64,000 nucleotides of DNA from Paragordius varius (Eukaryota; Animalia; Nematomorpha): NCBI GenBank assembly GCA_964247055.1, contig OZ176052.1:1922001-1986000 (forward strand), read 5' to 3'. The notes beneath the pieces were generated by a model. That model searched no databases. It was not told where the DNA came from and saw only the letters and a program-made list of their open reading frames with translations. Both the position numbers and the translations under genes were made by a program. Below are positions 1-57,482 of this stretch, piece by piece. The stretch's first letter is position 1. The number at the start of each line of letters is the position of its first letter.

Positions 1-83
1 TTTTACGCATTTTAAATTTTGAATAACTTTTGAAATGTTTATAAATCTACTAAAATATAATCCCATTTTAATTATTTTTTTAG

Positions 84-3000: not shown

Positions 3001-3108
3001 AAAATATGGAGATGCTATATTATTTTAGCGCTTTAAAAAACTAAAAAACATGTAAAGTGTTTCAAAATATCTAAAGTATTTTTTGTTAATTACTAACACT
3101 GTCGTTTC

Positions 3109-3139
<31 letters not shown>

Positions 3140-6100
3140 TATTAATTAAAATTTCTTTGAAATATTTATCTGGAAAAAATTTTATATGTAATCATATAAT
3201 GTATAATTATTTTTTTGGTTTAAAGATGTAATGTAATGCTATGTTTAAACATTCTTTTTCCCAATGTTTCAATAGATTTTATGGAATGATTGTTCGGATA
3301 AAAGCTTTTTTTGAGTTGCCAAGTACGCATTTAGAACCATTTGTTAAAGATGTAAGGCAAATTTTGTGCAATCATCAAAAAAATCCAAATACCAATCATA
3401 ATAATAGGTAATTTTATTATTAATAAATGTCATTTTAAATATAGGGAATGGAATTTTCAAATTAAATTTCGGACACAAATTAAATCAATAAAATTTTATT
3501 TTTATTTCATATTTTACAGCCATAATTTAATTATATAGAAACAAATTAAAAGAATATCGGTGTCAATTTTTATATTAAAGACAACTTTTTACGAAAAAAC
3601 CTGCTGACATTTACATTTTATCATTTTAGTGGCTGCTTATATTTCACTTTATATACCATTTGCACTTCAAGAGACTTTTTTGTTTTGTTTTTAACTTTTA
3701 TCAATTAAATCGTCAATAATTCATCTATTTTATTGTTTTTAACATATTTACTATTATTTAACATAATTTTTTAATCGATATCAACTTTTAATCTTTGAGA
3801 AACCGTATATCCTTATTAATTTCTTAAAATAATTTTGGATATTAAAAAGATTTTAACACCAAATGAAAAAATATATAAGTTTTCTGGGTTATTAATTAAA
3901 ATTTTCATTTAAAACATTTAAAAGTCAATAATTTTGTTGAATTGAAAAAAAATAGTTTGAAACAAAAAAGTGGTTTTTCAATAAAAATTTTTATTTTTAA
4001 ATGAATAAATATATAATAAATAAAGAAAATTAGGTTGATAAATAATAAAATAAAAAAATAAATGCAAAAATTATGGTTAAATCAAAATTTATAAATTTTA
4101 AGGACCAACTTGAAGTGTTAAAGGACCAACTTGAAATGTTCAAGGACCAACTTGAAGTGTTCAAGGACACTCTTGAAGTGCCAATGTATAGTAAGGCAAT
4201 TTGCAACACACAGTAGTGTATGAAAAAAACAACAAAATGTTGAATAAACAATTATTTACTTTCCTTTTTTCAATACACCTCCTTTAATGTGAAATAAGCA
4301 ACCGTTTAAAGGCATATACTGTATATTTCATGTTTTAAGATAACTTTTATTTTTTGATAAATCCAAACTATATGCTCACTAATTTTTGTAGAAATGGAAA
4401 TGAAAATCAACCCACAAAAATAGATGATATCAATAATACTTCAAATATTGATTCCACATTTTTTTATGATACACTATTATCACTTATAAAGTTTGGTAAT
4501 GAATGTACCCTACAAGATTTATCCTACAAAAATTTTATGCATTGGATATATAATTTAGATCCTGTACATGAATTCGAATCAAAATCATCACCTCATAGCA
4601 CTAATAATAACCATAGTAATAATATAAATAAATTTCCATTTCATCTTTTCTCACCTGCAATTAATGCCCTTTTCAACCAACTTAACAAGTAAATATTTTT
4701 TGGATTTCGTTAAAATTTGGACATCTAAAATTGATTGATTGGGCTTTAATTTAAATTAGGTTGTTTTTTATTTTATTTTCTGGTATTTACAGCATACGCG
4801 TGTCAAAAAATATCAAACAAAAAATTTTATAATTAAAAAAAATGCTAAATTTTAGCAAAAAAATGATGTTGCTTAAACAAATTTTAATTGAATACATCTT
4901 TCCAAATTTTGGCAATGAACTAACAAAAATTGATATGAATGGTATATTTATATTTAACTTTTTGAATCGATATTAAAGTTTTCAATAATCCTGCTTGAAG
5001 TTTACATTACGCTTGTTTATATCAAAAATAATTGGATAGCTTTTTTGGGGGAGATAAAACAAACGATATTATTTCCATTCCAATTCAGACCTGTCTTTTA
5101 CATGATTTTGAATAATTATAAAAATGGGTAGCATAAATAAAATCTTATCATTATTTTTTTTAATCAATTATTGAATTCAAATTTTTCATTTTCCTTTCCT
5201 TAGAGTTCTTCAAGACCTTTATATTGGAATTGAGTGTGAAAAATTACTAATTTTGGGTCAATCACTGCATTCATATGCCTTGTTTCATATACAAGCTTAC
5301 CGAGATAAATATACAATAATCAGCAGAAAGGGTATTTATTCTATAATTATCTTTTTTATAATTATTCATTTTCATTTTTTTATTATACCATTTACAATAA
5401 AATAAATTATATGTTTTAGAGCTAATATAACTCATCATTAATAATAAATATATTCTTATGGCATAGTTTATTATTTTTTCGGTAATATTATTTTTAAACC
5501 TGATTTCATTTTTTTAAAAATATTTTTAATTCACACCTTCAAATTCACCTACGAATAAATTATGTGTTTTTTAAGATTAAAAATTGTTTTGTATTGTTTG
5601 AAAGAATTTTAATTGTTTAAGGGTGAATTTGAACTGTAAATGGTATATAACCGCTTTATAAAGCACTTTTTCTACTAGAAACATCAAAATCAAAGTCAAG
5701 GACAGCTAATGAGAATCCTGTACAAGGTCATTCAAAACAACAGTCGAAAATGGAAAAATATTTTGATTTATACCATATAAAATGGATCATCCATCAAATA
5801 TATGAACTATTACATCAAACACTAAAATCGGGGAGACCTTTGATACAAATCATGAATATTTGGCAAAATTTTTATCTTAAAACGATGAAACAGGTTGGAG
5901 AGAGAGAAATTTGAGTTTTTTATTTTAATATTAATAATCAGTAAAAATTATATCTACAGAATTTTAATAATGATTAAAAACAAAATTGGCTTTTATAAAT
6001 AAAAATAATACTATTTCAATTGTAGAAGGCATTTTTCTAAAAAAGATTTATATACTGATTTGACTAAATATCAAATGTACTATTTTTTGTGATTTTATTT

Positions 6101-6860
6101 AAATTCTATACTATAGATGGTATATATGGGTTGGGTGATTGGTTGGGAATACTGTAAAACTGTATTAGATATTAACCAAAGGTTAATTGACGCTTTTAGT
6201 TCTACGTTTGCAGAACAGCCAGGATTTCATATAAATCAAAAGGTAATTTTTAAAATAATTTACTCATATGTATCGTTATGAAATAGGCGAATTCTAAAAT
6301 AAAATTCATTCTTGATTGATATGTTTTTTTAGATTTTTGTGATTACAGTTTGGCATTTTAATGGTTGCTTATTTTACACTACAGTAGTGTATGGAAAAAA
6401 CAACGAAATGGTGAATAAACAATTATATTACCTTTCTTTTTTCCATACACTCCTGTGTTGCAAATTGTCTTACTATAGTGTGAAATAAGCAACCATTAAA
6501 ATGCATACTATACTGTATATGATATTTTGGCATATTTTATTGTAATGTTACTTACTTATTAGATTATGTCCATATACTATGAATTTATGATGTTGGCTTT
6601 GGATAATTCCCACATTAATTTGAATGAATCTCCTCTCCATCGCGTTGAAAGAAACAATATGTGTCGACAAAAATTTATGGCTAAGGTAGTAGGATCATTC
6701 ATTTTTGCGTCTAAATTTTTTTATTTTCTTTATAAAATAATCATTTTTTACAAGTTATAAAATATATATATATATCAGTATTTTGACAAATTTTTAGCCG
6801 TTACTTGTTAAAACACCTTGGAATTCTATTTAAATGATTTTGGGGTTAATATGTATACAT

Positions 6861-6892
<32 letters not shown>

Positions 6893-9800
6893 ATATCATA
6901 GATATTTGAACAAATTTACTCGATTATCATTGTCTCATCTCCAACCCAACCTTCAGAGTTTGAAAACAGAACATTTATATCGCAGAATGATAACACTAAC
7001 AATACAGAACACAATTTAGGCTCAGGCCTAATTTCCATATTAACTTGCTTGAAATTATATGTAATTGCGTTTGTGGAAAAACATTTTAGTAAACTAAATT
7101 CGTATAATTTGAAAGAACATTTAAGCTCACCTCATAGTTATATACCTAAGGGGTATGATTTAACCGCTCATGAATGTTCAACCATACTTATGTTAACTAA
7201 AGTATTAACTTCCCTTTCTGCCCATTTGGATATTTTAAACTTTGGCATTTGCAAAGAAGAAATTATAAAATGGTTTGAAAATATAATGGATTTCCTGAGT
7301 CGATTACTGCATTATGGATATGTCCAAAATTTTGTATTTGACAATATTCCATATCTCTATTTCGGCGACAACACTAAAGATGTGGATAGACAAGTTATTG
7401 AAAGTATATAATTTTAAAAATGAATTTCAAACAGCTTACTGTAAAAATTCTTTGCGAATCTATATATGTAATTATGTTTATTGAAATGTTAAAAAAAATT
7501 ATTTTTTGCATTAACATATTGATAGGGATTGTTAGTACTCATGAAGCATTTGCGCCATTATGCCATATATGGACACAGCTTTTCATAAATTTGTGCCGAA
7601 AATCATCAAATAATGTCTTACATTCGGATAACAAATCTTTAAATCACCTGCAAGAGTATAAAATAAAATTTAAACTTTTTTTGAATTATATTTAGACATT
7701 TCAATATAAATTTTTTCCATAGACTTTTAATTAACATTCTTCGACAAAGACGCGAGCAATACTTGAAGAATAATATAAAATCGCAATCTGCAAGCAACAT
7801 AGATTTCATTGCATTTTCTACCCTAATTACTGATTATGACGATATATTTATGGTAATTTTTAAAACTGGTTTTAATTTATTTTCATAAATGTTTTTTTAC
7901 GCTATTTCAAAGGGTCTTTTATATATTGATTTATTTTTTATTAGCCAACTATTTATACCACAAACTCATCCGATAACGATAAAATTGATAAAACGGAGTT
8001 ATGTTTCAATCCAACTGCAAATTTTACCATATCGAATTTCAACTCAAAATTTTTGGATCGTATCTTTGATTTAGCTCTAAATCAATATTATTCTCAAGCC
8101 AAAACTAAAAAACCACAACTTAATGGTAAGTATGTTAAATATTCTAAGAATATTTTTTGATTTGTAATACAAATTTTCAATATTCAACTAATATGTTCTT
8201 TAGATCATGAATCCATATTTGAGATGATTGGGCAATATTTGTCACAACAAGGCACTAATGATAATAACGAGTTATTAATTAATACAAATCTCGTCAACAT
8301 TTATATGGTCGCATTCACCAAACTAAATGATTATATTGTATCTGACACATTTTCACAAAATAATATGAGTATGAATAAGGATAATATTTCCCAAGGTGGT
8401 ACAATATCCAAAAACGGCGAAAAAATGTATAAAAATTACATTGCAAGTCGTGTGGAAAATGTTAAAAGCTTGCTTGCAATCCTAACTGATTCGCTCTTAA
8501 AGATAACTGAGAAATGTTTCGTAAATGAGAAGAAAATACTGAATAGAGCGTTTCAAGATTTACAACGACAGATTAAGGAAGCCATTAACAGCTGTTTAGA
8601 GCTAAATTCCCAATTATTAACCACATATACATTGGCTGTATGTAATGATCGGAGTTTTGCCCTTACAGCGTTTAGCATAAGTAGTTTAAGGTACTTTTTA
8701 ATTTTAGAAATTTAAATATCAAAAATGATTTTAATTAAACTTTTTGCAGAATGACATTTTGTGCCTAAATAGTTTAGTTTTTCCGCGTGAATGTAATATT
8801 TACCCTAAAAACGCTTTTTAGATGTAATTATGTTATTTATGTTTAATAAAAAAAGTTTTATTTAATTTTTTGCCACAAAAAATACTTTTTATATATGGGT
8901 GGGAACTTTATTTAAAAATAGGTTTTTTTACCAAAGTTTGAGCGGTATAGTATTCCACAAATAGGTTTAACCCTAGTTACCTGTTAAAAATTTCTTTAAT
9001 GCTTTCTCTAATTTCAATATATATACTATTTTACAGACACTATTTATTTCAATGGTCATCATCGTTTTTTAACACTGCAATATTGTCCAACACCCATCCT
9101 GATTCTACATTTGTGTCCAATAATAAAAATATAAGTTCCACCAATATAATAAACATTGATAATTTTGACAAAAAACTTTTGATTGATCAAATACTGTTGT
9201 GTCTTTCAGCTTGTCAAAACTATTTATTGCATAAATGTCAATTGATTACAATCATTTTTGAACCAGGAAATTGGAATATGAATGGGAATGAATTAAATTT
9301 CAATATACGATTGGGTATTGTAAAGCATACCAACAAACCACAAAAAGTAGTACCAATTAACCATAATAATAATTCTGAGAATTTATCTTGTGATGATAGT
9401 AAAACAATAGTTAAAGCAGGAAATAAATGGATTAAACGTGAAACAAAGTTACGAATGGATATGATAAAAGAAGTGATATATATACTATTATGATATTTTA
9501 TTTTATATTTTTTGAGACACCTAAAAATGTTTAAAATTAAAATTATTTGTACAGTAAAAATTAAATTTTTAAAGACAAAACCATACTTTCCAAATCTTAA
9601 TATCAATATAAATCATTGTTATAAACTGCAAAGTATAAAATAGAGATGTATATTAATAACACAATCAATTACACTGGACAACAAATTTTTCTGCCACTCG
9701 AGTTTTTTGAATTTTCTGATATTTAGTATCTTTTTAACAGTAAATCTGAAATAAAAATTATAACTCGTTGGAGGAATTTTGTATAATTTGATTTTTTTGA

Positions 9801-12091
9801 TTATGCGCCCTCTTTATCAAAATTTTACTAAAAAATATTTTTCTTTGAAAATATACAGGTAATGCCCATTTGTAATATATCATTCGAAAGAGTAATAAAA
9901 ACTCTATAAAATGCATACTAATATGTATTACATCAACAGTTAATATTGGACACAAAGAGCGACAAACGCGCGAAGCGAGAACATTTTTTTTTAATTATTA
10001 TTTTTTTAAAACTAATGGATGAAAATAGCTCAAATTTTGTTTAGATGGTGATGAATGTCTAAAAAAGATAACACAAGAAAGTTTTTTTGATTAAAACATT
10101 TTTTTATGGCTTTTATGTCACTCAAAACAACCATTTTTAAGTTTTTTGTTTTTTAAAAATTACCATCTCATCAATATTAATTTATTTTCTTTATAAGGCT
10201 GATAATTTCGAAATTTTAAAGATAAAAACAAAGTTTAAGGTATTTTTGATCTTTTAAAGCCATTATGTAATAAATTTACAGTTATAACTATGCATTTTAG
10301 TATCCACTAGGTAAAATATTTATGATAATAATAATTTTTATTAAAAAAGCAAACCAAAAGCTTTTTCAATTATTTTTTTAAAATAAAATATTAATATAAC
10401 CCTAATAATTATACTAAAATAATTTATATGATTTTCAAATTAGTTTGTCTGTGAAAATTCTTGACTTATTTAAGTATTGAAAATTTCGACCATTTAAATC
10501 CAAATAACTTTTACATCCTATTGATTTAAATGACTTACTACCATTTAAAAGATGCAGTTTTTTGCGCTCTTTCGAATGATATAAAATACATGGCTTCTTA
10601 TCTAAAACTTTTAATTGCTAGACCAATTTTCTTTTCAGATATACTAATTATGTACTTTAATGAAATAAATTTTAAATTTACAAGAATGGCAGTTAAAAAA
10701 AGTTAAAATTTGTTGTCTAGTGTTATGCATTTTATGATTGTAATTAATTAATTTATATAGGAAAAATTAAGCTCTAAATTTGTTAAAAAAAATTTGTCTT
10801 TATATTTTTACGTTTGTCCGTATTATAATTACAATTTTTACTGTTCTCATAAAAAAAAGCTTAATTTAATGTTTATATTAAAATCCAAATTTTTATAATG
10901 AATAAAATTATTTTATGATGTTACATAATTAGGTATTTTATTTTGACAATGAAAACTCTGTCATAAAAAGTGCTCATCTACCAGCAAATGCTACACATAA
11001 CGATTCTCCAAAGTTGGATGAAATTATAAGTTTATCCGCATCAGGCAAATACACTAATATAAAGTATTTCACTTTTTTCAATTACGTTTTATTTAAACGT
11101 TTTTTTTATTTGTGATTTTGATCAATATACATGTAAGAATCAAATATATTGTTGCCTCAGATTAAGAAAATAAATTATATGTATAGCATGCTTTGAAACT
11201 AAGTATTTTCTGTAAATTACAAAAATAATTCTAAAGATTTATGATATATATAATTATATTCAATCATTTCCCAAATTTTACTTTTTTGTGGCTTTTAGAT
11301 TCACGATATACATTGAAGAATTTGTTAATTCTTTGCTAGGAATCTGGTTATATACCCAATTATTGGGTGATTTAGCCTTAAAACTTTGTCAAAGTCATTA
11401 CATAATAAATACGGCGCATTTTAACACTGTGCCCAGTCAAGTCAATCTTTTCATTGATCGCAAACAAGGGGGCACAACCATAAATAAGAATATGAATATA
11501 TCGAAAGGATTGAATGAAGCACCTAAATCAAATTATGAATGTTATGATAGAAAATTATTAAAGTAAGGAATTCTTATAATAGATATAACAATTTTTTTAG
11601 GAAGGTATTAAGTATGGTAATTTAAAGGCAATATTGTTACCAATGACTGTATATGGTTGAGACATATTTTATATTTTTTTCAAATTACTTAATATTAAAA
11701 AAATAATCCGCCATGATTCTAAAATGTTATTGTGATATTTTAGTTGTTAACTAATAAACAACTTAAAAAAATAATTTTTTGCACAAATTATATAGTGAAA
11801 TGTAATTATCAAAACGCCATATGTATATATATATGCCATTTACAGTTCAAATTCACCCTTGAACAATCAAGTTCACCCTCGATCAATTCGAATTCATACT
11901 AAAAATAAAATATGTGTTTTTCAGATTAAATTTTATTTATATTTTTTAATATTTTAAAATATGAAATTTTGTCTAAAATTAATAATACTAAAAAAATAAT
12001 AAACTATGCCATAAAAATATATTAAGTATGAATGATGAGTTACATTAGCCCGAAAACACATAAATTATTTTTAGGGTGAATTTGAATTGTA

Positions 12092-12123
<32 letters not shown>

Positions 12124-14379
12124 TCCTCTTATTTTTAGCTTTTTATTGCATGCGCTAACCCAAACATACCATTTAACATGTGCGTTTGATCGAAGACCTG
12201 GTCTCAAATTTTTACTTAAGCGTTGCTTTTATATTCATCAATCCCAAATAATATCCGCTAAAAACAGTAAGGACAATTTTGACAATAAAAATAGCGGCAA
12301 TCCATATGAAAGCGTCCAACATTCTAATCAATCCTACTCAAAGAGTAATTTGGAAAATACTGAATCAACAACTATTTTACCCAATCTATATAGGGTTGGA
12401 AGTTTAGCATTTGCTTACTATGGATTAATTTTGTTCCACATGTCTGTTAAAAGGTATCTTTGAATTATTATTCTAACAAAAAATATTTTTTTCAATTTAA
12501 TATCAACCAAAGACACCAAAATATAACTTATCTTTAGTTAATTTGTAAATTTTTATTTAATGTTCCATACTAATTTTATAATCATTTTTTTCGTAAGTAA
12601 AACTAAAAAAAACATTTAACATTTTAAATGATTTTTAAAATAATTTGCTCTCATTACCATATATACTCAGAAACGATATTGATGGTCTTACAAACGGATA
12701 CTTGAATGATGATTGCAAATTATTTTTGAGTTTTTTGGATTCTCTCCTCACATTTTATTGTGTGCTCAATAACCAAGAAATTAAGTAATCATTTAAATAA
12801 CCAATATAAAAATTTATTTTTCACTATTCTCGCTTTGATTCAACTAAGTTAACCCGAGTTAATATATTTATTGATGCACAATAAATCAGTTTTTTTCCAT
12901 ATAACGACGTTTAATATTTATAACCCTATAAAATTTAAGATTATCATAAAAATAATTTATATCTAGCTTTCCAAAATACAGAAGGTTTAAGTTAAGTTAC
13001 GTGAAAATCGAGAAATTTATTCAATTTACTTTTCCGAGTATGCCGTAAGAAACTATAAAATTTAGAGTTGTAGTAATGCTTCTTAAAATAAATTATTCCC
13101 TTTTAGGTGGATTCGTTTCTATCATAACTGATTTAAGAATTAATATTGACTATGATAAAAATTTAATCTTTTACCATTCAAAGAGATTGGAATCTATAAA
13201 CACGCTATAAATTTTTCAAAAGTCATAAATTATAAGAAACGACTATATAGGTTAGGTCTTCATAAATTTATATTACAGTAAAAACTGAAATTATACGGAT
13301 AAAACCTAAAAATATAAAGTAATATAAAAAATACCATACTTTTTAAACTACATTTTTAAAAGATAACACATTGTTTTAATTTCAAAGTATGAAAAATGAT
13401 ATATTAATTGGATACACAATCAATTATATATGTTACAATCGTAATTATATAATTTATATGAGAAAATTAAGGTTTATAAAAGTATGGTTGTCTTTTGAAA
13501 AAAAATTATTGTCTTTATATTTAACATTTAGTCCGTATAATTTCAAATTTTACTCTATAGTTACCATCCATTATTAATAGAAAATCATCTTTAAAGAAAA
13601 ACAATACGAATGAAAATAAACGCTTTAGTAGTTCTACCACACCACTGACATTTGCCAATCTTTTTTCCAACACTCCCGCCCCTTCAAATAAAAATATTAC
13701 ATTGTCAAACATAACTACACGTGGAATAAAATCTTCGAATTCCACCAATAAAAGATTGGATAAAAATCAAAAATTCATAATACGGAAACAGAAAAGCCTT
13801 AATTTGGAACAAGAAACAAGTCCTGTCGTAAACATTCAACATTTTGATAAATTTATTATGCAACACCATCCTCGACAAATTGAAAGTCATTTGGATTCTT
13901 TACAAAAGGTTGACACAAAAATACTCTTTGAGTTTTATTATTTTTGTTAAAATATTAATTAGTATATATTTTAACTTTCCTTTAAATATAATTATAGGTG
14001 AGCTGAGATTTTCTAATTTGCAAATTTTTAAAAGGCTTTTTGAAAAATTAATTTTTATTTTTCAAAAATTAAAAACGCCGTTAATCTCGCTTTTTTAAAT
14101 TTTTACTAAAACTAAAAACACCATCACTGAAGACATTTTTAATCCCCATAATCTAAACTTTTGTTGGTTATAATTTAAATTTATTATGATTAGGACAATG
14201 AAATGCACAAATGTATATGGATGAAAATTACGTTTGCTTTCCTGGAACTTTTAGTTAAGGAGAAAATACATTTATCTGACATGCTTGTTAATCAATTAAG
14301 CCTCGTGTTTCAACAATTCACTCATATCACTGATTTCATGCATTATTTTAAAAAAATTAATGTTATGTATACAAAATGA
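84..14379 (+). CDS. Large multi-exon gene of unknown identity, copy A (3' half only; 5' part lies before the window)
   Basis: Chain of GT-AG-bounded exons, e.g. 84-253 (FEKDEFSFEHN...), about 1658-2027 (GHHDRKKIYAQF...), about 2600-2934, about 6908-7406, about 8205-8690, about 12142-12452, about 13570-13908 (...QHHPRQIESHLDSLQK) and probable terminal exon 14194-14379 (DNEMHKCIWMK...TK*). Exons are better conserved than introns against copy B. I do not recognise the family; the protein looks helical with N-rich linkers. Confidence 0.8.
1321..1592. mobile_element. hAT (Charlie-like) MITE
   Basis: CAGGGGTGTCCACAACGCGGCC...GCGGCCCGCG..TTACCCCTG, flanked by an imperfect 8-bp repeat (GTATAGTC/ATATAGTC). 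Intronic and shared with copy B. Confidence 0.65.
3654..4188. mobile_element. TA-targeting non-autonomous element with 21-bp subterminal repeats, nested in a family-2 MITE (copy A only)
   Basis: TA|TACCATTTGCACTTCAAG...CTTGAAGTGCCAATGTA|TA, with about four tandem AAGGACCAACTTGAAGTGTTC units at 4100-4180. Empty site TATA in copy B at about 43637. Confidence 0.8.
5386..5645. mobile_element. MITE family 1 (TACCATTTACAG termini)
   Basis: TACCATTTACAA...GAACTGTAAATGGTA flanked by TA. Duplicate at 44862 to about 45163. Confidence 0.7.
6346..6515. mobile_element. MITE family 2 (CAGT..GCATTTTAATGGTTGCTTATTTCACAC TIR; Tc1/pogo-like)
   Basis: TA|CAGT...ACTG|TA with a TIR of about 35 bp. Ortholog at 45903-46093. 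Confidence 0.75.
9552..10843. mobile_element. MITE family 3 interrupted by the Chapaev3-like element
   Basis: Left TA|CAGTAAAAATT at 9552 and right TTTGTCCGTATTATAATTACAATTTTTACTG ending at 10843. Confidence 0.55.
9672..10722. mobile_element. Non-autonomous Chapaev3-like (CMC superfamily) element, copy A only
   Basis: TTA|CACTGGACAACAAATTT...AAATTTGTTGTCTAGTG|TTA. The orthologous empty site in copy B (about 49277) has a single TTA. A second family copy lies at 34081-34951. Confidence 0.8.
11834..12097. mobile_element. MITE family 1
   Basis: TGCCATTTACAGTTCAAATTCACCCTTGAACAAT...GGGTGAATTTGAATTGTAAAT, with (TA)n on both sides. Confidence 0.75.
13276..13555. mobile_element. MITE family 3 (CAGTAAAAATTGAAATTATACGGACAAAA TIR)
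   Basis: TA|CAGTAAAAACTGAAATTATACGGA...TCCGTATAATTTCAAATTTTACT. Ortholog at 51909-52164. Confidence 0.7.
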
Positions 14380-14483
14380 TTTAAAACTGTTTTCTTAAAT
14401 AAATATATTTTGTGTTATCAGAATCTAATATGCCAACGGAAAATTGAGCCTTTTTTACATAAAATAATTATGTTATGTAAATA

Positions 14484-14753
14484 TACCATCTACACCTCAA
14501 ATTTACTCTTGAACATTTTATATTCACCCTAAAATTAAAGTATATTTTTGGGGTTTAATTTGACTCAGTATTGATGTGAATTTTTTCTTTTTTATGTAGT
14601 CTATTTTTCAAGGTTACGTCAATTATAACGAAACTTATTTTTCTTTGAATAACAAAAGATAGGAATTTTTTATTTTTAATTTGAAATCTTGGTCAATTTG
14701 AATTGTTCAATGGTGAATTTAAAATGTTCAGGGGTGAACTCGAGGTATTGGTA
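14484..14753. mobile_element. MITE family 1-related, degenerate
   Basis: TACCATCTACACCTCAAATTTACTCTTGAAC...GGGGTGAACTCGAGGTATTGGTA. Duplicate at about 56197-56466. Confidence 0.6.
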
Positions 14754-14773
14754 TACATAACCAAAAAATAGTA

Positions 14774-15015
14774 CAGTAAAAATTGAAATTATGCGGACAA
14801 AACGTTTAATGACAATTTTTTTTAAAAAGACAACCATATTTCTTAAACCATAATTTATCTTTTAAAATCATTTAATTATCATTGATTAAGTTACCAATTA
14901 CATCTCTATTTTTTTGTTTTGTAGTTTAAAAAAATTTGTTATTATTAAAAGAATAAAGATTAAAAAAAGTGTGGGGCGTCTTTTGGAATTTGTCCCTATA
15001 ATTTAAATTTTATTG
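14774..15015. mobile_element. MITE family 3
   Basis: TA|CAGTAAAAATTGAAATTATGCGGACAAAACG, with internal AAAGACAACCATA. Ortholog at 56487-56746, which has a clean right TIR ending ACTG|TA. Confidence 0.7.
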
Positions 15016-15615
15016 TATATTATGTTGAATTGGAAACGGCTTTAAACCTAGCAAAGACGCCACACTAAAAACAATTTTTGGTACAAAGTTTTATGTGAAT
15101 TGGCCATTTTTACCTTGTAAAAATAAATTACCTTTTTTAGATTTTTTGTTAAATTTTGATTTTTGCATGTAAAGATTAAAAATGATTTTATTTTTTCCCA
15201 TAAAGCTAACAATAAACCGTAAGAAATTTGTGACACATGTCCCACCAATGCATTCTATTTCGATATGGTTTTGACAGAATTATTGTGCCACATAGATGAA
15301 GTTCATCTTATATCTTATGATTAAAAAATAAGTTTTTACACAATATTTATATGTAGAATGAGCCTGATTTTGATTATGGTTTGCTATAAGGGGTTTGATA
15401 TATATATATATATATAGTCTTTGCATGGCACCATTTGGCATAAACAAAACACTTTAAGAACTCATTGAAAGTCACTTTTTTTATAAATCTATCGAATCAA
15501 TTTGAGCTTGACCAATTTAGAAGTAGGATTGGATAAAAAGCTCCACAATCTTTTATAAATTTTCCGCGTTATTTTTTGGACTATTTAAATTATTGGCCGG
15601 GCTTTTTTTTGTATA

Positions 15616-15805
15616 CAGTATATGCATTTTAATGGTTTCTTATTTCACACTGTATGTAGATGGGAAATTTCCCACACAGTAGTGTATGGAAAAACAACAA
15701 AATGTTGAATAACAATTTTTTCCTGTCTTTTTTCCATACACTCACTCGTGTGTTGCGAATCGCCCAACTATAGTGTGAAATAAGCAACCATTAAAATGCA
15801 TACTA
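15616..15805. mobile_element. MITE family 2
   Basis: CAGTATATGCATTTTAATGGTTTCTTATTTCACACT...AGTGTGAAATAAGCAACCATTAAAATGCATACT. Ortholog at 57302-57482. Confidence 0.75.
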
Positions 15806-16929
15806 TATATATTTCTAAGTTTAACGTATTTCAAATTACGGGTCATCGAACCATGCGAAAATGTTTTAAAAACAGATGCCATGCCAATATAAATATAATA
15901 ATCGAGGGTTTACCTAAATAATTTTATATGTTTTTGCCTTAGACAAATCGCTGTTATATTATTTTAACATTTTTTTTATTTTTTACAATACATATTCAAA
16001 TTGAAATATTTTGATATATTTAATATTTTCACCACAAAAAGGATATTTTTATAAGATATTATCATAACCATTTTATAGGACTCAATGAAAATATGCATTT
16101 AAAACAATAATTGGACTGATGTTTTGGTGCAATTTTTTGATTCCGGGGGTTGCATTAGATATAAAAACAGTTCTTGATTAAATGATTTGGGAAGTCACTT
16201 GAAAGTTTAATACTGGTCTATTATTTTTGTTAATAATAATTGGGTTTCATTTTTTGCCACCATTCTCATTAAGATAGTTGCCTTTCGTTAAAGGTAATAA
16301 AATTAACTATTGCTAGGTAGATTTTCATTTGGAATTGAGATTTGCTTTTTTAACATATTTTTCATTATTGGGAATACTAATTTTATTCTATAAACTTTGT
16401 ATGAAATTATTCTCTACTTTTCTCTACCTTATTTTAAATTCTTTTGAGTTGTGTTAACCTATAGATATCTATTTCAAGAGTAATTATTATAAAATTATCA
16501 TTAATTAATTTTCTTTTAAAATATAGACATAAAAATACTTTTATAAATCACATGTTAAAAATAGGTAACAAAGTTTAAATTTTAAACAAGGATTATTCAT
16601 ATCTGTTTTTAGAGAACAATATCATTGTTTGAAACGCTAAAAAGCTATTAGCTCCGGTTCTATATAAACAATTTCGGTTTGAATTCGGATATAAATTCTA
16701 TTGTAATTTTGATAATCACTTAAACAAAAAAAATTCAAACTAATTGCACTCCAATCTTAGTTCCGATTTTAAACTAACTCGATGTTTAATAGACATCCAA
16801 AACTGATTATATCATATAAATATATAATTATCAAATCAAAAAAATTTATTTACAATATTGTAATAATAACAAAATCATTAACTAAATACTACTATCTAAA
16901 AACATTATAATAAAAGGTAAAGCATTTTG

Positions 16930-18460
16930 TTTAAAGAGTTGGTTAGTTTAAGTTGTGGGAAAATAATTGAGTAATGTGAGGTGTAGGTGTTAGAAGGTAT
17001 ATGTAAGGTGAGGTGTGATTTTGTAGGAAGAGAGGATTTGGAGATGTGTTGATGTAATGTAAGAGAATATGGGAATATCAATTCATAAAATAAAAAAATA
17101 TTAAATATAAAAAATGAAAATGCTTAAAAGGTAAATAGGAGAGGTGATGTAATGAGTGTGTGAGATGGAAGGTGATGAATGGGATTGTTAGGAGGTTTTG
17201 TAAAAGGGGTGTAATGTAAGGGAATAAGGGTTTATAAAGTAAAAATATATTAATATATGTTTAAAAGTATCCAAAAATGAGATTTGATGAGTTTGAGGAT
17301 ATATAAGTAAGGTGAGGTGTGTTGGTAAATGTTGGGTATATCGTAAGGATAAGGGAATTTGAAGTAAAAATATATTCATATATAATAAGAAGCGTCCAAA
17401 AATGAGATTTGATGAGTTGATGTATATGTAAGGTGAGGTGATTTTGTAAAGATAGGGATGTAAAGCAAGGGAATATAAAATGAGGGAATATAAAGTAAAA
17501 ATATATTCATATATATAAAAAGTATCCAAAAATGAGATTTTTGATGATGTATATGTAAGGTGAGGTGCGGTGTAATGGTAAATGGTAGGTGATTTTGTGA
17601 AGATAGGTGTGTAAAATTAAATAATATTAATTAAATATAAAGATATGGTGAAAGAAAGAGTAAATTGGAGAGAGGTGATGTGATATGTGGGTTCATGAGT
17701 TGTAAGGTGAGAGTGTGATGAAAGGGATTTCGTATAACATGTGTTGATGTAATATATAAGGTAATATGGGAATAAAATTTAAATAAAATTAAAAATAAAT
17801 CTATTTAAGGTAAAAAGAATGTAATATTCAAAAAATAATGGAATGAGATGAGTTTGTTGTATGTAAGGTAAGTAAGATGAGGTGGGATGGTGAAAGAGAT
17901 GTATGTTGATGTAATTAATGTAAGGTAATATAAATTAAATAGAATATAAAAAGTATCCAAAAAATAGAAAAATATGTGATGAATGGTGAATTTGAAGATG
18001 TTTATGTAAGGTAAAGAGGTATGATGATTAATGGTATGTGATTTTGTAAGGATGGAGAATGGAATGGTTTGATATAAAATAAGGGAATATATTTTTAATA
18101 AAATAAAAAAATAATTTGAATATAGAATAAAAGATAGCGTTTAAAAAATAATGAGAGTGATGATAAAGGTTAAGGTGAATGATATGAGGTATGATGGAAA
18201 TGTTGGGTGATTTTGTAAAGAAAGAATGGAAGATATGTATGTTGATGTAATGTAAGGATGGGTAAAATTAAAAAAAATGTCAAAAGTAGGACATGTGATG
18301 TGTGTGGGTGTGTGTATGGGTGAGATGAGTTGAGGTTTGATGTAAAGGAATGTATTTCGTAGAATAAGAATGAGAATAAAAATATGAATATATGGAATAT
18401 CGAAATAGAAATATGTCAATATATATATGAATAATAATGTTGCATAAAATGTATATAGTG
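16930..18460 (+). repeat. Strand-skewed (G-rich, C-depleted) degenerate tandem array with units of about 125-145 bp
   Basis: G-rich and A/T-rich blocks alternate. AAAAGTATCCAAAAATGAGATTT-like anchors occur at about 17264, 17388, 17519 and 17949. GTAAGGTGAGGTG occurs at about 17003, 17327, 17428 and 17555. Almost no C on the + strand. Confidence 0.85.
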
Positions 18461-18503: not shown

Positions 18504-20827
18504 TCATACACGGGTCTCCAAATAAAAGACCCCTAAATATCAAAAAATAAAAAAATTTTTATATTGTTAATGTAAAAGTGTTATTTAAAACTTACTGTAT
18601 GTTTCTCGAATAATACAATCAGTCATCACAGGTTCATAATCGCATGTACAACCCTTGCATTCCAACAAATCTATTCCTGGTAAGCCTGAATCTAGAGACT
18701 GCTCATCACAAGGTGAAGGGGTCCATGTAAAATACTGAGGTTCGTCATTGAATCTTACTGTTTTTTTCGGAACAGTTTTTTCTACATTTAATTAAATAAA
18801 TTTTGTAGCAATATCGATAATAATAATTGCTTTTTGCATTAATCTCGGTGTTGTAAAAAATGTTTCGAAATATTTATTTTACCGTTTGATTCAGGCGAAG
18901 TACAATCTTCATCGAAGGAATTATCGCTTTCTATTGCATTTATTTCTGCCCAACTAGGTTCTGGATAGAACAGTTCTCCGACAGGGGAAATCGGAGTCCA
19001 ACGGAAATATTGAACGTCTTCATTGAAAACCACTCTTTTTGGAATTGTTTCTAGTTTAATAAATTTTTATTTTATGGATATTATTAAAGTAACATACCCA
19101 AAAATATTTAACTATGTTTTTTAAGTTTTAATAAAAATCATAAAATAGTTTTTTACCATTTTTGCATCTATTTCGACCCTTGATGTTCGATTTCTTTTGA
19201 ATCGCATCAGGCTTACCAGGCGGACAAACAACTAATTCATGCATAATAAAATTGATTTTGTAATATTAAAACCTCATCAATTTTTTAAATAAAATCAGAA
19301 CATTAGAGCATATTGATCTCTCATTTAAAAATTTAACAGTCAATAATGCATGTTTGTCGTATCATGATTCACAAATAAGTATTGACTTAAAATGTTACTT
19401 TAAAATACATCACCTAAATTTTGGTTTTATGGATATAATTTCTAAATATTATAATTTTCACAATAGAGCTTTATGCCCTTTGAGTGTCTTTAAAAAATGA
19501 ACTCATCTCAAATTTATATGAAAAAAAAATGTTTTTTTTATAAAAATTTACATCAAATAAATAAAATATAAATTTTTACCAACTAAAGCGTCATTCTTTT
19601 CCATTTTCCCAAAACAAGGAAACAGACGATTCCACCACTTCTTCAAACCTGTAATTTAAAATTGATATTTAAGAATTTTTTAAAGATTAAACATTTTTGC
19701 AGCCCACGAGAAATTTAAAATATAAATTACAAAATCTGAATAAAATTGACAAACATATTTTTTGAATAAGTTTTTGCGGATTTTGGCAATGAAACAAAAA
19801 TTGTGAAAAATAGTAATTTTTACAGTCTTATGTTTGATTTATAATAAAATATTTCTTAATTCCCATATTTTGGGAAGGCAGCCCGTCGGATTAGATATAT
19901 TTTTTTAAAAAAGCCATTAGCTTTAATTCAAATTTTCATGAAAAATATTTTAAAAGTTCGAAGTTTAAAACATAATGACCTTGTCCGATAACACTTCTTT
20001 CATTATATTTTTTCTTTTGAATACGCTTGCGGATAAAAATATTTTTCATTTAATATACGATGTGAATGTAAATTTTCAGTAAAAGTAAATTATTTATTTG
20101 ATTGTTGCATTCTAAAATGTTTTAATTAGCCAACTTTATATAATGATTATTAAAGCAAAAATATTTTATTTTATATAATAGTGTTGGGTAAAACTTGTTA
20201 TTTAATACTTTTGAAGGAATTGAATGGTTTAAAAATTAGATTTTGAGTTTTATAAAGGATATAATTCGGTTCTCCAAACCAAAAATAGATTTGATTAATA
20301 TTTTGTTATTTGTCAAATGGATAACATTATCTAATAAGACAAATAAGGTGTTTAATAAGATTTCACAATACTCTAAATTTTAAAATATCTCCTTTTGATT
20401 ATAGGGAAAATATGGATAAGAACCGATACGTTCACAACATCTTAACATATTTTGCCCGATGTTTAGTTATTTATGCAATGTTTAAAATTTCAACTAGGCG
20501 CTATTATTGGTTATTGGGTTCTTGTTCGTTAATAGAAAAAAAATAAGCAGGTTTTTCGTTTTTTCTTATATAATCTCAAACTTAAAGATCCGGCAATCTT
20601 TTATAAAAAACTGGCAATATTTTTTAATCATACTGTATATATGGCTGTTTACTGTAGGTTTGGCTTTGACAGTATAGTAAATGTCAAACATATAGGTTAC
20701 ATGACAAAAATTTCAATTAAAATTAGAATAACTCTTTCTGTGGTTTTGAAATATACAAAAATTGTATAAAACCTTTCCCGCTGCCTTTTCTTCCGTCATT
20801 TCTCTTCTTTCGAATCCAAAAAGTCAT
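18504..20827 (-). CDS. Orphan 193-aa protein with two RVxF-like modules and a C-terminal PDZ-type motif (6 exons)
   Basis: Exons 20827-20773, 19648-19580, 19231-19157, 19050-18883, 18781-18596 and 18532-18504. All introns are GT-AG and phase 1, and internal exons are 69, 75, 168 and 186 nt. Spliced ORF: MTFWIRKKRNDGRKGSGKGLKKWWNRLFPCFGKMEKNDALVVVCPPGKPDAIQKKSNIKGRNRCKNETIPKRVVFNEDVQYFRWTP...ESNEKTVPKKTVRFNDEPQYFTWTP...CIIRETYRVFYLETRV*. Exon 1 (GTTTTA donor) is the least certain. Confidence 0.75.
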
Positions 20828-31847: not shown

Positions 31848-34800
31848 CCTTTATATCAAATGATCAATGCATATAGATTATAAACTTTATGCCAAATTAA
31901 CTATTTAATATCTTCTTGATAAAAATTTAAAAATTGGTACAATTAAATGAACGAAATGATATAAGAAACATATAATTAGGAATTCAAAACTCACACTTTT
32001 ATGAAAACGTAATTCATAGTTAAATAGCACATAGTGATTTTAATAGTTTGTTTTAGATTAATTTTTTAAACATTTTTTTACAATATACCAATTACAACAT
32101 TAATACTAAGTTATCAATCTGTAAGGTTGACTTTTATGCAAATTACTCATTAAACTTATTTATATATATACCATTTACAGTTAAATACCCTCGAAATAAT
32201 TTAAAATTCACCCTAAATAAATTATGTGTTAGTTAATATAAAAAATTATTTATATTTTTGTTTTTTTATAAAAATAATATTTTGTTTAAAATTACAACTT
32301 AATACAGAAAAAATATTAAACTATGGACGGACATATAAAGAAATATTACATATTAATGATACTTTATATTGGCCCAAAAAACACATAATTTATTTTTAGG
32401 ATGGTGAATTTAAATTGTTCAAGGGTGAATTCAATATTAGATATATATATATATATATATATATATATCTTTAATTACATGCTAAATTTTATATATAAAA
32501 TTAAAATTATTTATTGGTAGAAAATACGGCATGTCAAATCAATAACTTGAACAAGGATTATAATGTTGATAATCAAAATGCAAGTTCAATTAACGATAGT
32601 AATCAAACATCTTTCGATACCGAATCGCATTATGAAACACCATCGGACGCTGATGTAGAAATTGATAGTAATATCTTAACAATATCTAATAAATTTCAAT
32701 GTTGCTTTTATAAATACATTTAAAAACCAATTTTTTGTTTTTTAATATATTCAATATAAATTAAAGATTAAAGGAATAAAAATGAAATATCATAATTAGT
32801 TATTTTCGAAAAATTTATTTTAACACATTAAACAGAGGAGTAAATAAATTGACACTTTTTTATAAAATAGTTTTCACTTGCTATATAGGTATAATCTAAT
32901 AAAATATTTTATTGAAATAAATAGCAAATTTAAAAATATTATCAATTTCAGCGAAGCGACTAATTTCCTATCCCAGAAAAAGGATTTATTTTCAAGCCGA
33001 TTATATGAGTGCGTAATTATAATTTACATTCACATACAACTATAAAAATAATTTAAAATACTGTAAAAAATAAAGAGATACACATTAATTGTAGTTAAAA
33101 TATGATTGCGCTTAATTATAAAAACCTTCCATGAAGGATTTATTATATATTTCCTCGTCCGGTTTAAATTATCAAACCGAAATCATATAATTTTCAAACA
33201 AAATTTATTTTGTTTAACATTTCTATATAGAAATTGACTTTTTAACTACTACGGAGGACGCATCAGTTTGTAAGCCGCCAAATGGAGACAATATTGATGA
33301 CAAAAACATCGATAATTTATTTGACAAAAATCACAAAATGAAATATAAAACTTCATCTAATGATTTATCTAGCAATAATAATATGGTAAATTTCCCAGGA
33401 AATGATTTAATCCCTTATGACAATAATGAATCATCGGAAACAGAGGAAGATATATGCGATATCTTTGATTTTGGAACTCAGCTTTCAACTCATGAAACTA
33501 CACCTGGTGTCATTCGGACTTTAGATGGTAATTTTAACTTTTCAAAACTATTTTTATATATGTGATAATTTAATTTTTGTTTTTCGTTTTATATATTGGT
33601 TAAAATCTAATTTTTGTCTAAATTTCAACGTTATTAAATGGAAAAGTGAAATTAACACACAGATCATAATTTAAACATTCAATTTACTAGATTGGTAAAT
33701 AAATTAAAAATCTGAAAAGTCAGGCAAATTTATATAACAATTAGTAATAAAAGTATGTAATATATATTGTTATTAATTTGATTTATTACAACAAACAACA
33801 CTATTTATTCTGAGTGGTTTTTTTACCCGACGCCCCATATTAGATTCAAGCGAACATAATGAAAATAAAATTAACACTGATGAAGTAAATGGGGCAATTT
33901 TCACCGAAATATCTTTGGAACCTGAATTAAATAACCAATTATTAAATTTTAAACAAAAATTAAATCTCACCATGACACAAGGTAAAGGAAAAAACAAGCT
34001 TATGAATGAAGAAATGGTATCTACTTACTTACTTGCATATATATTTCCCACACGTTTTTTTACATTAGTTTTATTAATTACACTGGACAACAAATTTTTC
34101 TGCCATTCGAGTTTTTTGAATTTTCTAATATTTAGTATCATTTTAACAGTTAATTATTAAATTTAAAACTAATGGATGAAAATGGCTCAAACTTTGTTTA
34201 GATGGTGATGAATGTGCAAAAAAGATAACACAAGAAAGTTTTTTTGATTAAAACATTTTTTTATTGCTTTTATGTCACTCCAAACAGCCATTTTTAAGTT
34301 TTTTGTTTTTTTAAACACTACCATCTCATCAATATTAATTTATTTTCTTTATAATGCTGATAATATCGAAATTTTAAAGATAAAAACAAAGTTTAAGGTA
34401 TTTTCATCTTTTATAGCCATTATGTAATAAATTTAAAGTTATAACTATGCATTTTAGTATCCACTAGGTAAAATATTTATGATAATAATAATTTTTATTA
34501 AAAAAAGCAAGCCAAAAGCTTTTTCAAACATTTTTTTTAAATTAAATACTAATATAACCCTAATAATTATATTAAAATAATTTATATGATTTTCAATTAG
34601 TTTGTCTGTGAAAATTCTTGACTTATTTAAGGATTGAAAATTTCGACCATTTAAATCCAAATAACTTTTAAATCCGATTGATTTAAATGACTTAATACCA
34701 TTTAAAAGATGTAGTTTGCGCTCTTTCGAATGATATAAAATACTTGGCTTTATATCTAAAACTTTTAATTTTTGAAATTTCGAGTTTAATGTTAAATCGG

Positions 34801-37800
34801 GGCCAAAAATTATCGATAAACTCTAATATAAAAAAATTCTTCCATGCTAGACCAATTTTCTTTTCAGATATACTAATTATGTACTTAAATGAAATTAATT
34901 TTAAATTTACAAGAATGGCAGTTAAAAAAAGTTAATATTTGATGTCTAGTGTTATTATTACAGTATGCATTTTAATGTATATTAAGTAATTTTATTGCCT
35001 GCCAAATAACATAAATGGTTTATCAAATGCGTAGAATACTGACCCACGAAATTATTTCGTAGTACACATATGAAAGAGGATTGACGTGAGAATTAACATA
35101 GGCTTTAATTTGATGGATATTTTGTAATGTTAAATTTTGAGAATATTATAGCAATTTATGTTAACTTTTGTAATATTGTTGTTACGTATTTAGATGCGGA
35201 ATTTTATGGGTTTTTATCTTTGATAAATTAATAAATAGTAAAATACGTATTTTAAGGTTTTTTATGTGTCCTAAATTAAATAATATATATTTTTTAACAT
35301 GCTATAGTTGTTATTACTAATATAAAAAACAGGTAAATATATATTTGTGAAAATTTAAGTAGATTTTAGATTTTTGTCTTTTATGTTTTGCTTTGTTAAT
35401 TATTAATAATTTTTAAGTATTTCAGACATTTTAATCAGGTAAAAATTGCGGTTTTTAACAAATTTAGTAAAATAGTTTTTTTTTGTTTTTTTAGGTTTTG
35501 CATTGTTAATTGTAACTAACTACTACATATTTTGGACATTTTAATAATTACAGGTAAAAATTGCGGTTTTTAACAAATTTAGTAAAAATTTAATTTTTTT
35601 GTTTTATAGGATTTTCTTTGTTAATTGTAATTAATTAATTTTGGACATAATTAATAAAGGTAAAAAATGAGGTTGTTTTTATATTTAGTAAAAATTTAAT
35701 TTTTTCTTGTTTTTTTATTTAATATTGTTAATTATAATTAATTACTACATATTTGGAAATTTAAATAAATCAGGTGAAAATGGCGGTTAATAACAAATTT
35801 TAAATGTAACATTTTTTGTATTTATCATTGTTATTTAATTAATTACTAAATATTTTGGACATTTAAAAAAATGGTGTAAATTGCGGTTTTTCATAAATTA
35901 GTAAAATTTTATTTTTTGTTCAACCTTGCTAATTTATTTATCACTATATATTTGTGATACATTGATATATACAGGTAAAAATTATGACTTGCGGTTTTTT
36001 AAATTTTTTAAAATATTTTTTTGGTTTTACTTTGATAATTTATATAATTAATATAGTTAACATATCTGAGTAGGTAAAAATGCATGTTACGGTTTTATGT
36101 TTGCCATTTTATTTTCCAAATCAACTATTTATATTTTAACAAACACCTTATGTCACCAAAGATTTAAAATAAGATCAAGATATATAAAACATCTTTTAAA
36201 GTATCTGAATATCGCCAAATATAAATAAATTTATTTAAATTATAAATGTATAATTATACAAAATATTCATATTATGTTTGAAATTAACATTCTTCTTATT
36301 GATATTAATACAGGTAATTTGTTTATATAAATGATGTACGATGCGGTGTGCGTTCATGATGATCATATAGATTGAAGAATAGTATAAGATGCAATAATTA
36401 AATGCAGATAATCCTGAAAAATTTAATCACCATCATTTTTTAGGTAGATTCTATCAACTAAAATATAAGATAATTAATATATTAGAAAATTGATACATGG
36501 ATTCTAGAAGTATTTTCAACATATTTAAATATTGGGGGAAACATTCATAGTTTGAAAGGGAACTCAAAAGGTTGACTTGGCTTTTTAACAACTAAATTTG
36601 CAAAAAAAAATATTTTCTTCGTGATAAAAAATTTAAAAATGATACTTTATGTTTTTTTTTCGTTCTACCATCCTAAACTATAAATATGAAAAAGCTTATA
36701 TGATTTCACCATACCAATGACGTCAAATAGAAAATAGAAACAAATAATTTTTTTCAAAAGCTTGGAGCACTCCAAAAACTAAGCAGACACTAACATTGTT
36801 GGCTTTGGTGAAGAATAATTTTTTATATTTATAGTTTAGGATGGTAGAACGAAAAAAAACATAAGGTATCATTTTTGAATTTTTTATCACGAAGAAAATA
36901 TTTTTTTTTCAAATTTAGTTGTTAAAAAGCCAAGTCAACCTTTTGAGTTCCCTTTCAAACTATGAATGTTTCCCCCAATATTTAAATATGTTGAAAATAC
37001 TTCTAGAATCCATGTATCAATTTTCTAATATATTAATTATCTTATATTTTAGTTGATAGAATCTACCTAAAAAATGATGGTGATTAAATTTTTCAGGATT
37101 ATCTGCATTTAATTATTGCATCTTATACTATTCTTCAATCTATATGATCATCATGAACGCACACCGCATCGTACATCATTTATACAAACAAATTACCTGT
37201 ATTAATATCAATAAAAAGAATGTTAATTTCAAACATAATATGAATATTTTGTATAATTATACATTTATAATTTAAATAAATTTATTTATATTTGGCGATA
37301 TTCAGATACTTTAAAAGATGTTTTATATATCTTGATCTTATTTTCAATCTTTGGTGACATAAGGTGTTTGTTAAAATATAAATAGTTGATTTGGAAAATA
37401 AAATGGCAAACATAAAACCGTAACATGCATTTACCTACGATATGTTAACTATATTAATTATATAAATTATCAAAGTAAAACCAAAAAAATATTTTAAAAA
37501 ATTTAAAAAACCGCAAGTCATAATTTTTACCTGTATATATCAATGTATCACAAATATATAGTGATAAATAAATTAGCAAGGTTGAACAAAAAATAAAATT
37601 TTACTAATTTATGAAAAACCGCAATTTACACCATTTTTTTAAATGTCCAAAATATTTAGTAATTAATTAAATAACAATGATAAATACAAAAAATGTTACA
37701 TTTAAAATTTGTTAAAAACCGCCATTTTCACCTGATTTATTTAAATTTCCAAATATGTAGTAATTACAAGAAAAAATTAAATTTTTACTAAATATAAAAA

Positions 37801-49800: not shown

Positions 49801-50690
49801 TCTTTGCTAGGAACGTGGTTATATACCCAATTTTTGGGTGATTTAGCCTTAAAACTTTGTCAAAGTTATTACATAATAAATACGGCGCATTTTAACACTG
49901 TGCCCAGTCAAGTCAATCTTTTCATTGATCGCAAACAAGGGGGCACAAACATAAATAAGATGAATATAAATATATCGAAAGTATTGAATGAAGCACCTAG
50001 ATCAAATTACGAATGTTATGATAGAAAATTATTAAAGTAAGGAATTCTTATAATAGATATGACAATTTTTTAGGGAAAAAAATTTAGTATTTGGCCATTG
50101 ATTAATAATATATATTTTTAGCTTTTATCTTGGTCTAGATATTAAGTATGGTGATTTAAAGTTTATAATATTGTTACAAATGACTTTATATGGTTGAAAC
50201 ATTTTTTTGGCATTCTCATTTTTTTCAAATTATTTAATGTTAAAAAAATAGCAATCAAAAGGCCACGATTCTAAAATGTTATTGTGATATTTTAGTTGTT
50301 AACTAATAAGTAACTTAAATAATTTTTGCACAAATTATATATAGTGAAGTGTGATTATCAAAGCGCCGTATGTATATATATATATATATATATATATACC
50401 ATTTACAGTTCAAATTCACCCTTGAACAATCAAGTTCACCCTCGATCAATTCGAATTCACCCTAAAAATAAAATATGTGTTTTTAAGATTAAATTTTATT
50501 TATATTTTTTAATATTTTAAAATATGAAATTTTGTCTAAAATTAATAATACTAAAAAAATAATAAACTATGCCATAAAAATATATTAAGTATGAATGATG
50601 AGTTACATTAGCCCGAAAACACATTATTACTTTTAGGGTGAATTAGAATTGTTCGAGGGTGAATTTGAATTGGAAATAATATATATATAC

Positions 50691-50745
<55 letters not shown>

Positions 50746-52980: not shown

Positions 52981-53087
52981 TATTATGTATACAGTATGTT
53001 TAAAACTGTTTTCCTAAATAAATATATATATTGTGTTAGAATCTAATTTGCCAACGGAAATTTGTGCCTTTTTTCATAACATAATAA

Positions 53088-56000: not shown

Positions 56001-56190
56001 GTTGGGCTGGTCACATCCATAGAGCGCAAGACACAAACTGGATAAAGCTCATACAGTCTTATTCAACCAATAATAAAAACAAAAAAGGAAGACCTTATCT
56101 GGCAATCCACCATTCAAGAAGACCTGGATTCCCTTAGTTTCGATATCGAACAAGCTCACGATAGAAACAAATGGAAAAAAAGCGTATAAA
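53088..56190 (+). mobile_element. Decayed near-full-length RTE-clade non-LTR retrotransposon (APE endonuclease + RT)
   Basis: Endonuclease motifs IRLATWNI (about 53310), SDRLL and IGGDLNSHFG. RT motifs KCPGLSEIT, WLNNYTIPIYKGKGD, NFRPIRIL, AFDSVP and GPHQGSILSPLLF. The YADD site reads (Y)AND with a 1-nt loss at about 55300. Downstream are a Cys-rich finger (CSVC..CNKCLKWVHKKC..CPPC), FTYLG and RLRWAGHI. There are multiple frameshifts and stops. Absent from copy A at about 14470. No clear TSD. Confidence 0.93.
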
Positions 56191-57301: not shown

Positions 57302-57482
57302 CAGTATGCATTTTAATGGTTTTTGCTTATTTCACACTGTAGATGAGCAATTTCCTAGTGTATGGAAAAAACAACAAAATGTTGAATAACAATATTTTCC
57401 TGTCTTTTTTCCATACACTCACTCCTGTGTTGCAAATTGCCCAACTATAGTGTGAAATAAGCAACCATTAAAATGCATACTA
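57302..57482. mobile_element. MITE family 2
   Basis: Begins TA|CAGTATGCATTTTAATG, identical over 17 bp to the foldback terminus. Confidence 0.75.

Follow-up and report, generated by a model that had tools for sequence, protein, structure and literature searches.

Proteins that dock onto PP1 through an RVxF motif are the closest described parallels to the gene analyzed here. They include small disordered regulators (inhibitor-2, inhibitor-3, KNL1, and PNUTS), the PPP1R15A/B proteins with their viral counterparts ASFV DP71L and HSV ICP34.5 (PF10488), and cofactors with an RVxF-phiphi-R-W string (Phactr1, spinophilin/neurabin, and PNUTS). A SILK element, with the consensus [GS]-I-L-[KR], lies N-terminal to RVxF. 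Spinophilin and neurabin couple PP1 to PDZ recognition, and class I PDZ ligands of the form E-[ST]-x-V are found, for example, at the tails of NMDA receptor NR2 and Kv1.4. The RVxF consensus is [K/R]-x(0-1)-[V/I]-x-[F/W], where x is not Pro (PMC6406801; PMC10731240). PP1 cofactors lengthen this motif by a phi-phi beta-strand about five residues on; in Phactr1, the motif Phe is F522, phi-phi spans 527–530, and the Arg and Trp of the string are R536 and W542, approximately 14 and 20 residues after F522 (PMC7599070).

We analyzed a 64,000-nucleotide stretch of the genome of the nematomorph Paragordius varius (the window), in which a minus-strand gene encodes a protein that shares several of these characteristics. 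It is likewise small, is predicted to be largely unstructured, and has the [KR]-[KR]-V-x-F core of the disordered PP1 regulators, with the same basic N-flank and acidic C-flank, followed by hydrophobic and aromatic residues that could extend a PP1 beta-sheet; a conserved basic-Ser element lies upstream. However, no homology to these regulators was detectable, the upstream element (KKSN[ILM]K) is not SILK, and the module that carries the core has here undergone exon duplication and spread to about 20 loci. As in PPP1R15A/B, DP71L, and ICP34.5, Val and an aromatic pair occur no more than a few residues after K-V-x-F, but PF10488 gave no HMMER match and the eIF2-alpha/actin-binding C-terminal half was not recognized by eye. 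Compared with the RVxF-phiphi-R-W cofactors, the window copy literally reads RVVF-NEDVQ-YF-R-W. Its Arg and Trp were rejected as those of the string because they lie at +8/+9 after the Phe, off the Phactr1 register; the Arg after YF also varies among the paralogues described below (R/C/N/T/S). Unlike spinophilin and neurabin, the protein carries a candidate PDZ ligand, not a PDZ domain: its ETRV-COOH end, the product of a conserved terminal micro-exon, fits x-[ST]-x-V and has Glu at -3, whereas the paralogues on one other contig (C4) differ, ending in EIDV.

The gene consists of six exons joined by five introns (window positions 20827–18504, minus strand), all introns being GT..AG and in phase 1. 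The spliced ORF of 582 nt encodes 193 amino acids and a TGA stop (18506–18504), and its script-made translation includes KKWWNRLFPCF, KKSNIK, TIPKRVVFNEDVQYFRWTP, and TVPKKTVRFNDEPQYFTWTP, with ETRV at the C-terminus. This is exactly the model of the first-pass annotation, including its exons 1 and 6, and it recurs in 11 other intact paralogues; the recurrence of exons, phases, and splice dinucleotides lifts the model above chance. In all 12 copies, exon 1 reads M[TNS]FW..K.[KR]N and ends in a GT donor (in the most distant copies, MTFWIRKKRNGERK.. on contig C5 and MNFWSKKKKN.. on C4), exon 2 retains an invariant KW..R...CF, and exon 6 encodes [FY]Y[LW]E[TI][RD]V-stop after a conserved AG acceptor, in support of the terminal exon proposed earlier. 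After module 2, exon 5 continues into an acidic stretch with Cys residues, LECKGCTCDY...DC..RETY. The net charge is strongly asymmetric: the N-terminal third, rich in basic and aromatic residues, carries +15, and the acidic remainder -14. The window is strongly AT-rich (~24% G+C) and unmistakably eukaryotic, and the stop codon is TGA in 12/12 copies in a genome of 24% G+C. Read-through of this TGA was considered and rejected, the frame beyond it being broken by indels among the copies on C3, the contig of the window. The features are listed in Table 1.

Table 1. Exons of the window gene, its relatives elsewhere in the genome, and other features of the window (window positions unless a contig is named)
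Feature	Position	Strand	Description
Exon 1	20827–20773	minus	ATG + 18 codons + 1 nt; MTFWIRKKRNDGRKGSGK; donor G/GTTTTA
Exon 2	19648–19580	minus	phase 1-1; LKKWWNRLFPCFGKMEKNDALV; basic/aromatic, invariant Cys-Phe
Exon 3	19231–19157	minus	phase 1-1; VCPPGKPDAIQKKSNIKGRNRCKN; KKSNIK at 19196–19179
Exon 4	19050–18883	minus	phase 1-1, 168 nt; module 1; core PKRVVFNEDVQYFRWTP at 19042–18992; KRVVF at 19039–19025
Exon 5	18781–18596	minus	phase 1-1, 186 nt; module 2; PKKTVRFNDEPQYFTWTP at 18770–18717; KTVRF at 18764–18750
Exon 6	18532–18504	minus	terminal micro-exon, 8 codons; (R)VFYLETRV + TGA; ETRV at 18518–18507
Paralogues on C3	1.61–1.94 Mb		n = 8, window copy included
Paralogues on C4	near 11.13/11.14 Mb		n = 2
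Paralogues on C5	near 7.40/7.42 Mb		n = 2
Module-only loci on C4	3382848–3458654		n = 7 (3.38–3.46 Mb; L020–L024)
Module-only locus on C4	12670370		n = 1 (L025)
Duplicated block	17–16117 and 40113–57788		82–92% identity
Long ORFs in duplicated block	2600–9493 and 42656–49118	plus	multi-exon gene; no Pfam match
Gap in second block copy	53085–56243		~3.1 kb; relative to 14468–14549
Non-LTR retrotransposon	53654–55873		fragmented
Foldback	34953–38778		inverted repeat with internal direct repeats
Foldback, first arm pair	34953–35304 / 38778–38427		97.7%
Foldback, second arm pair	35739–36693 / 37766–36819		98.4%
Dispersed repeat	9991–10616 and 34150–34770		0.63 kb, 93.6% identity, direct orientation
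G-over-C skewed region	16001–18340		GC skew 0.50; GT/GGT-rich simple repeats

A six-frame search of the organism's own 110.6-Mb genome with exon 4, and also with exon 4 and exon 5 profiles, identified 12 loci that contain both modules, eight of them clustered on C3 and two each on C4 and C5. All 12 share the same architecture of six exons with every intron in phase 1 and AG/GT at each boundary, so that 120 splice dinucleotides are kept, and their open frames are intact at 187–194 amino acids even though the protein identity among them falls to ~40%. Two C3 loci (L013 and L015) that could have been taken as truncated copies were rejected as such, because insertions, one in intron 2 and one in intron 1, have moved their 5' exons ~4 kb away. 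The same insert enlarges intron 2 of one (L013/L028) and intron 1 of the other (L015/L029) by ~4 kb and encodes ..RKKRDKSEKG.. and ..FGEEEKNLAL.. in a single frame, and probably represents a mobile element. At eight additional loci, the similarity is confined to the module exon, with the same phase-1 exon start, AG/AA CCA, and a K-x-V-x-F...Y[HYF].WTP.SP core; most read EPKKSVTFSEVNQYHSWTPVSPV, and the one at 12.67 Mb on C4 reads EPKKKVRFNENRLYYVWTPDSP. The remainder of the gene at these loci has no similarity to the window gene. About 20 loci thus have the module exon in common. The earlier description of the locus as an orphan gene holds insofar as it was matched only within its own genome, but the singular was wrong, there being a 12-member family with eight single-module relatives. 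The window gene is an intact copy in a real family of small genes that is restricted to this lineage and has been amplified in tandem.

The tandem amplification is visible within the window itself. A block of ~16 kb near its start is repeated about 40.1 kb downstream, and the gene copies on C3 at 1823, 1863, 1901, and 1940 kb are spaced at 38.5–39.4 kb. Taken together, the duplicated block and the spacing of the copies indicate that the window gene is carried in a tandem segmental duplication with a unit of ~39–40 kb, which also bears the paralogues at 1823, 1863, and 1901 kb. The last tandem unit in the window is without a gene copy.

Exons 4 and 5 are homologous to each other (hhalign probability 97.5%, E = 5e-12, 48 columns) and both are in phase 1-1, which confirms that their paralogous modules derive from the duplication of one symmetric exon, as had been proposed. 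The two modules are conserved to different degrees. All 12 paralogues share P-K-R-V-x-F-N in exon 4, which forms the longest invariant block of the protein (alignment A1); F15, P19, S21, P22, and G24 are also invariant, and module 1 as a whole, E-P-x-x-P-K-R-V-x-F-N-[DE]-x-x-x-[YF]-F-x-[WF]-x-P-x-S-P, is the most constrained element. In exon 5, only P-K...F...F..T.S is invariant (alignment A2), and the motif differs between subfamilies: K[KR]TVRF on C3, KRVTF on C4, and KNDIF on C5. In the window copy, KRVVF and KTVRF both satisfy [K/R]-x(0-1)-[V/I]-{P}-[F/W]. The two RVxF docking motifs that the first-pass annotation had read here therefore fared differently: the first fits the consensus, and is conserved as PKRVxFN, in all 12 copies, whereas the second is retained in 10/12 and no longer fits in the C5 pair, so that it is not family-wide. 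Module 1 has a basic N-side flank and an acidic C-side flank, and the hydrophobic pair that had been noted after RVxF is present throughout, as an aromatic [YF]F at +6/+7 from the Phe in 12/12 paralogues.

Outside the modules, KKSN[ILM]K in exon 3 is invariant in 12/12 paralogues and, for this reason, is probably functional. Its earlier reading as SILK-like has to be abandoned: all copies have S-N-[ILM]-K, with Asn in place of the first hydrophobic residue, and none fits the consensus. A basophilic-kinase site would be an equally good guess. The C-terminal tail is ETRV in 10/12 copies and EIDV in the C4 pair, with Glu at -3, the terminal Val, and an upstream Tyr invariant. The proposed class I PDZ ligand is therefore kept in most copies, but the Ile at -2 in the C4 pair means that the class-defining Thr is not family-wide; such a C-terminus arose in 2.9% of shuffles of the window protein. 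The N-terminal third contains an invariant Trp, Phe, and one Cys (..CFG..); membrane binding, nuclear targeting, or nucleic-acid binding would each be possible.

The divergence of the paralogues has the form expected of coding genes under moderate purifying selection. The dN/dS values (Nei–Gojobori), calculated, like the alignments, from the joined translation, were below 1 in 66/66 pairs of the 12 paralogues; they ranged from 0.15 to 0.66 within the C3 cluster (median 0.31), and were 0.27 and 0.51 for the C4 and C5 pairs, respectively. Within C3, exons 3–6 were 93.6% identical and introns 3–5 77% identical, with ~10% gaps, an intron divergence ~3.6 times that of the exons. The stronger conservation of exons than introns, together with dN/dS < 1, supports the splice model. 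The same values bear on the view that the gene is non-functional, either as part of a young amplified segment whose frames are open by youth or as a member of a never-expressed family. Its product was not found in a collection of 15 billion proteins and its copies lie within young ~39–40-kb segmental duplications, but the C3, C4, and C5 subfamilies are separated by dS of 0.4–0.9, and yet every copy retains its frame, intron phases, and splice dinucleotides with dN/dS below 1, and the introns have diverged faster than the exons; we consider this view very unlikely.

As regards function, it is plausible that the members of this family are PP1-interacting proteins, and we assign a probability of roughly 0.42 to the reading of the window gene as an intact member of an amplified family whose product docks onto PP1 through RVxF. 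Four STPPase_N matches represent the PP1-type catalytic genes of this genome. Module 1, in an extended strand, would dock into the RVxF pocket of the PP1 catalytic subunit, an interaction to which we give slightly less than an even chance, and its downstream aromatic pair would act in the manner of phi-phi. On this reading, the protein would serve PP1 as a regulator or targeting subunit, or else be a substrate that docks onto it and has TP/SP sites nearby. Module 2 would add another docking site, weaker or dispensable, and the conserved Y-x-E-x-x-V tail would be recognized separately as a C-terminal motif, of the PDZ type in most copies. The pattern itself is degenerate: among shuffles of the 193-amino-acid protein, 39% had one or more matches to the general RVxF pattern and 10% had two or more, whereas a stricter pattern was matched two or more times in 0.5%. 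The argument for PP1 therefore rests on conservation rather than on the match itself. The frequency of chance matches also favors the idea that the module serves as a compact structural or interaction element, folded as a beta meander and binding a partner other than PP1, in which the RVxF match is coincidental. The conservation of exon 4 reaches well beyond the motif (P19, S21, P22, G24, P29, and P31), and AlphaFold2 (AF2), given the exon 4 paralogue alignment, produced a model with a pLDDT of 64 in which residues 1–30 (72–79) form a three-strand beta meander; if this meander is real, the Val and Phe could be buried instead of offered to PP1. Exon 5, treated likewise, had a pLDDT of 51 and was predicted to be effectively disordered. 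However, the exon 4 model was built on a shallow alignment containing only paralogues and had no significant structural neighbor with Foldseek against the PDB or in a shape search of the ESM Atlas, the nearest structures being generic chromodomain- or WW-like three-strand sheets with E > 1. Sequence searches, which were run exon by exon, likewise provided no link to known PP1 regulators. Pfam (HMMER) had no family for any exon or for 24 module sequences, PF10488 at E <= 10 included, and the profiles of both modules found among PDB sequences only a chance match to a HIT protein (E = 0.009). When 1.84 billion representative proteins were searched exhaustively by HMMER with the exon 4 profile, no relatives were recovered; fragments of the organism's own genome are absent from this set, which therefore covers the lineage poorly, and the blank holds for that collection only. 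The search returned 24 weak matches, all rejected: four are translated bacterial repeat arrays (FNPRSPCGER...) aligned to positions 12–30, and a like pattern of multiple matching stretches is seen in the remaining 20. On the other hand, the invariant block coincides exactly with the K-R-V-x-F core and its usual basic and acidic flanks, and the ESM-Atlas look-alikes of both modules are clusters bearing PP1c_bdg. A non-PP1 module consequently seems to us a possible but somewhat doubtful account.

These ESM-Atlas clusters also bear on a possible relationship to a described family. In the feature search with exons 4 and 5, the top results were small viral clusters with scores of 0.82–0.84, in which 29–41% of members carry PF10488 (PP1c_bdg), and the order of residues in the modules, K-V-x-F and then x-E-x-V-x-[YF][YF], resembles that of PPP1R15. 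Shuffled proteins reach the same score range a third of the time, and the search therefore points the modules only weakly to PPP1R15-type PP1-binding regions. PF10488 matched none of the 24 module sequences and nothing in the whole genome, although in the latter search the controls were equally silent, which makes it uninformative, and the C-terminal substrate-binding half was not recognized in a comparison by eye. We accordingly consider it highly improbable that the family is remotely related to the PPP1R15/GADD34/DP71L PP1c-binding region and recruits PP1 to eIF2-alpha. The scaffold put forward in the first-pass annotation combines several elements: a palmitoylated or membrane-bound N-terminus, two PP1 molecules held simultaneously, and a PDZ tether through ETRV. 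Ten of the 12 paralogues do have two RVxF-type modules, ten have a class I PDZ-type end on a conserved terminal micro-exon, and the invariant Cys of ..CFG.. lies inside the +15 basic/aromatic N-terminal third. Each of these claims is nevertheless a short-motif resemblance, and the C5 pair no longer has the second RVxF and the C4 pair has Ile at PDZ position -2; we regard the bivalent, membrane-anchored PDZ scaffold as mostly speculation and improbable as a whole. Fast-evolving tandem families are often gamete-specific, and it is conceivable, at long odds, that these genes encode small adaptors specific to this parasite lineage, a new and fast-evolving class of PP1 targeting subunits. Their exon-duplicated RVxF-phiphi module would bind one or two PP1 molecules, which the basic head, by binding membranes, and the tail, as a PDZ ligand, would bring to a membrane or PDZ scaffold, perhaps in gametes.

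The gene family is well supported and unlisted, and its proposed function is a guess. If the module does bind PP1, a single docking exon invented in this genome would have become the core of about 20 amplified genes. This would be a clean natural case of a short linear motif that spread through the duplication of exons, and would give a parasitic animal that has been little studied its own set of lineage-specific PP1 regulators. The window contributes one more copy of the family, together with the family census and a table of motif conservation.

Several other features were observed at these loci and in the rest of the window. Immediately 3' of the gene, ~40 nt of flank can be aligned across the C3, C4, and C5 subfamilies. 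Both C4 paralogues (L016 and L019) contain a perfect inverted repeat of 9–10 bp, GAATGATTG...CAATCATTC, that starts a few bases past the TGA (folding z of -3.5 and -4.3). A post-stop hairpin was rejected as a feature of the family, being strong only in this pair, weaker in the C5 copies (L017 and L018), and prominent in none of those on C3. The duplicated block of the window contains a multi-exon plus-strand gene with long ORFs in each copy. Its second copy is split by a gap occupied by a fragmented non-LTR retrotransposon, in which one ORF encodes an endonuclease/RT with a sub-threshold Exo_endo_phos_2 match and a second has weak, Cys-rich, PHD/FYVE-like matches. Between the gene and this second copy lies a large foldback with two pairs of nearly identical arms, and the window also contains a dispersed repeat pair. 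The region immediately 3' of the gene is characterized by a strong skew of G over C.
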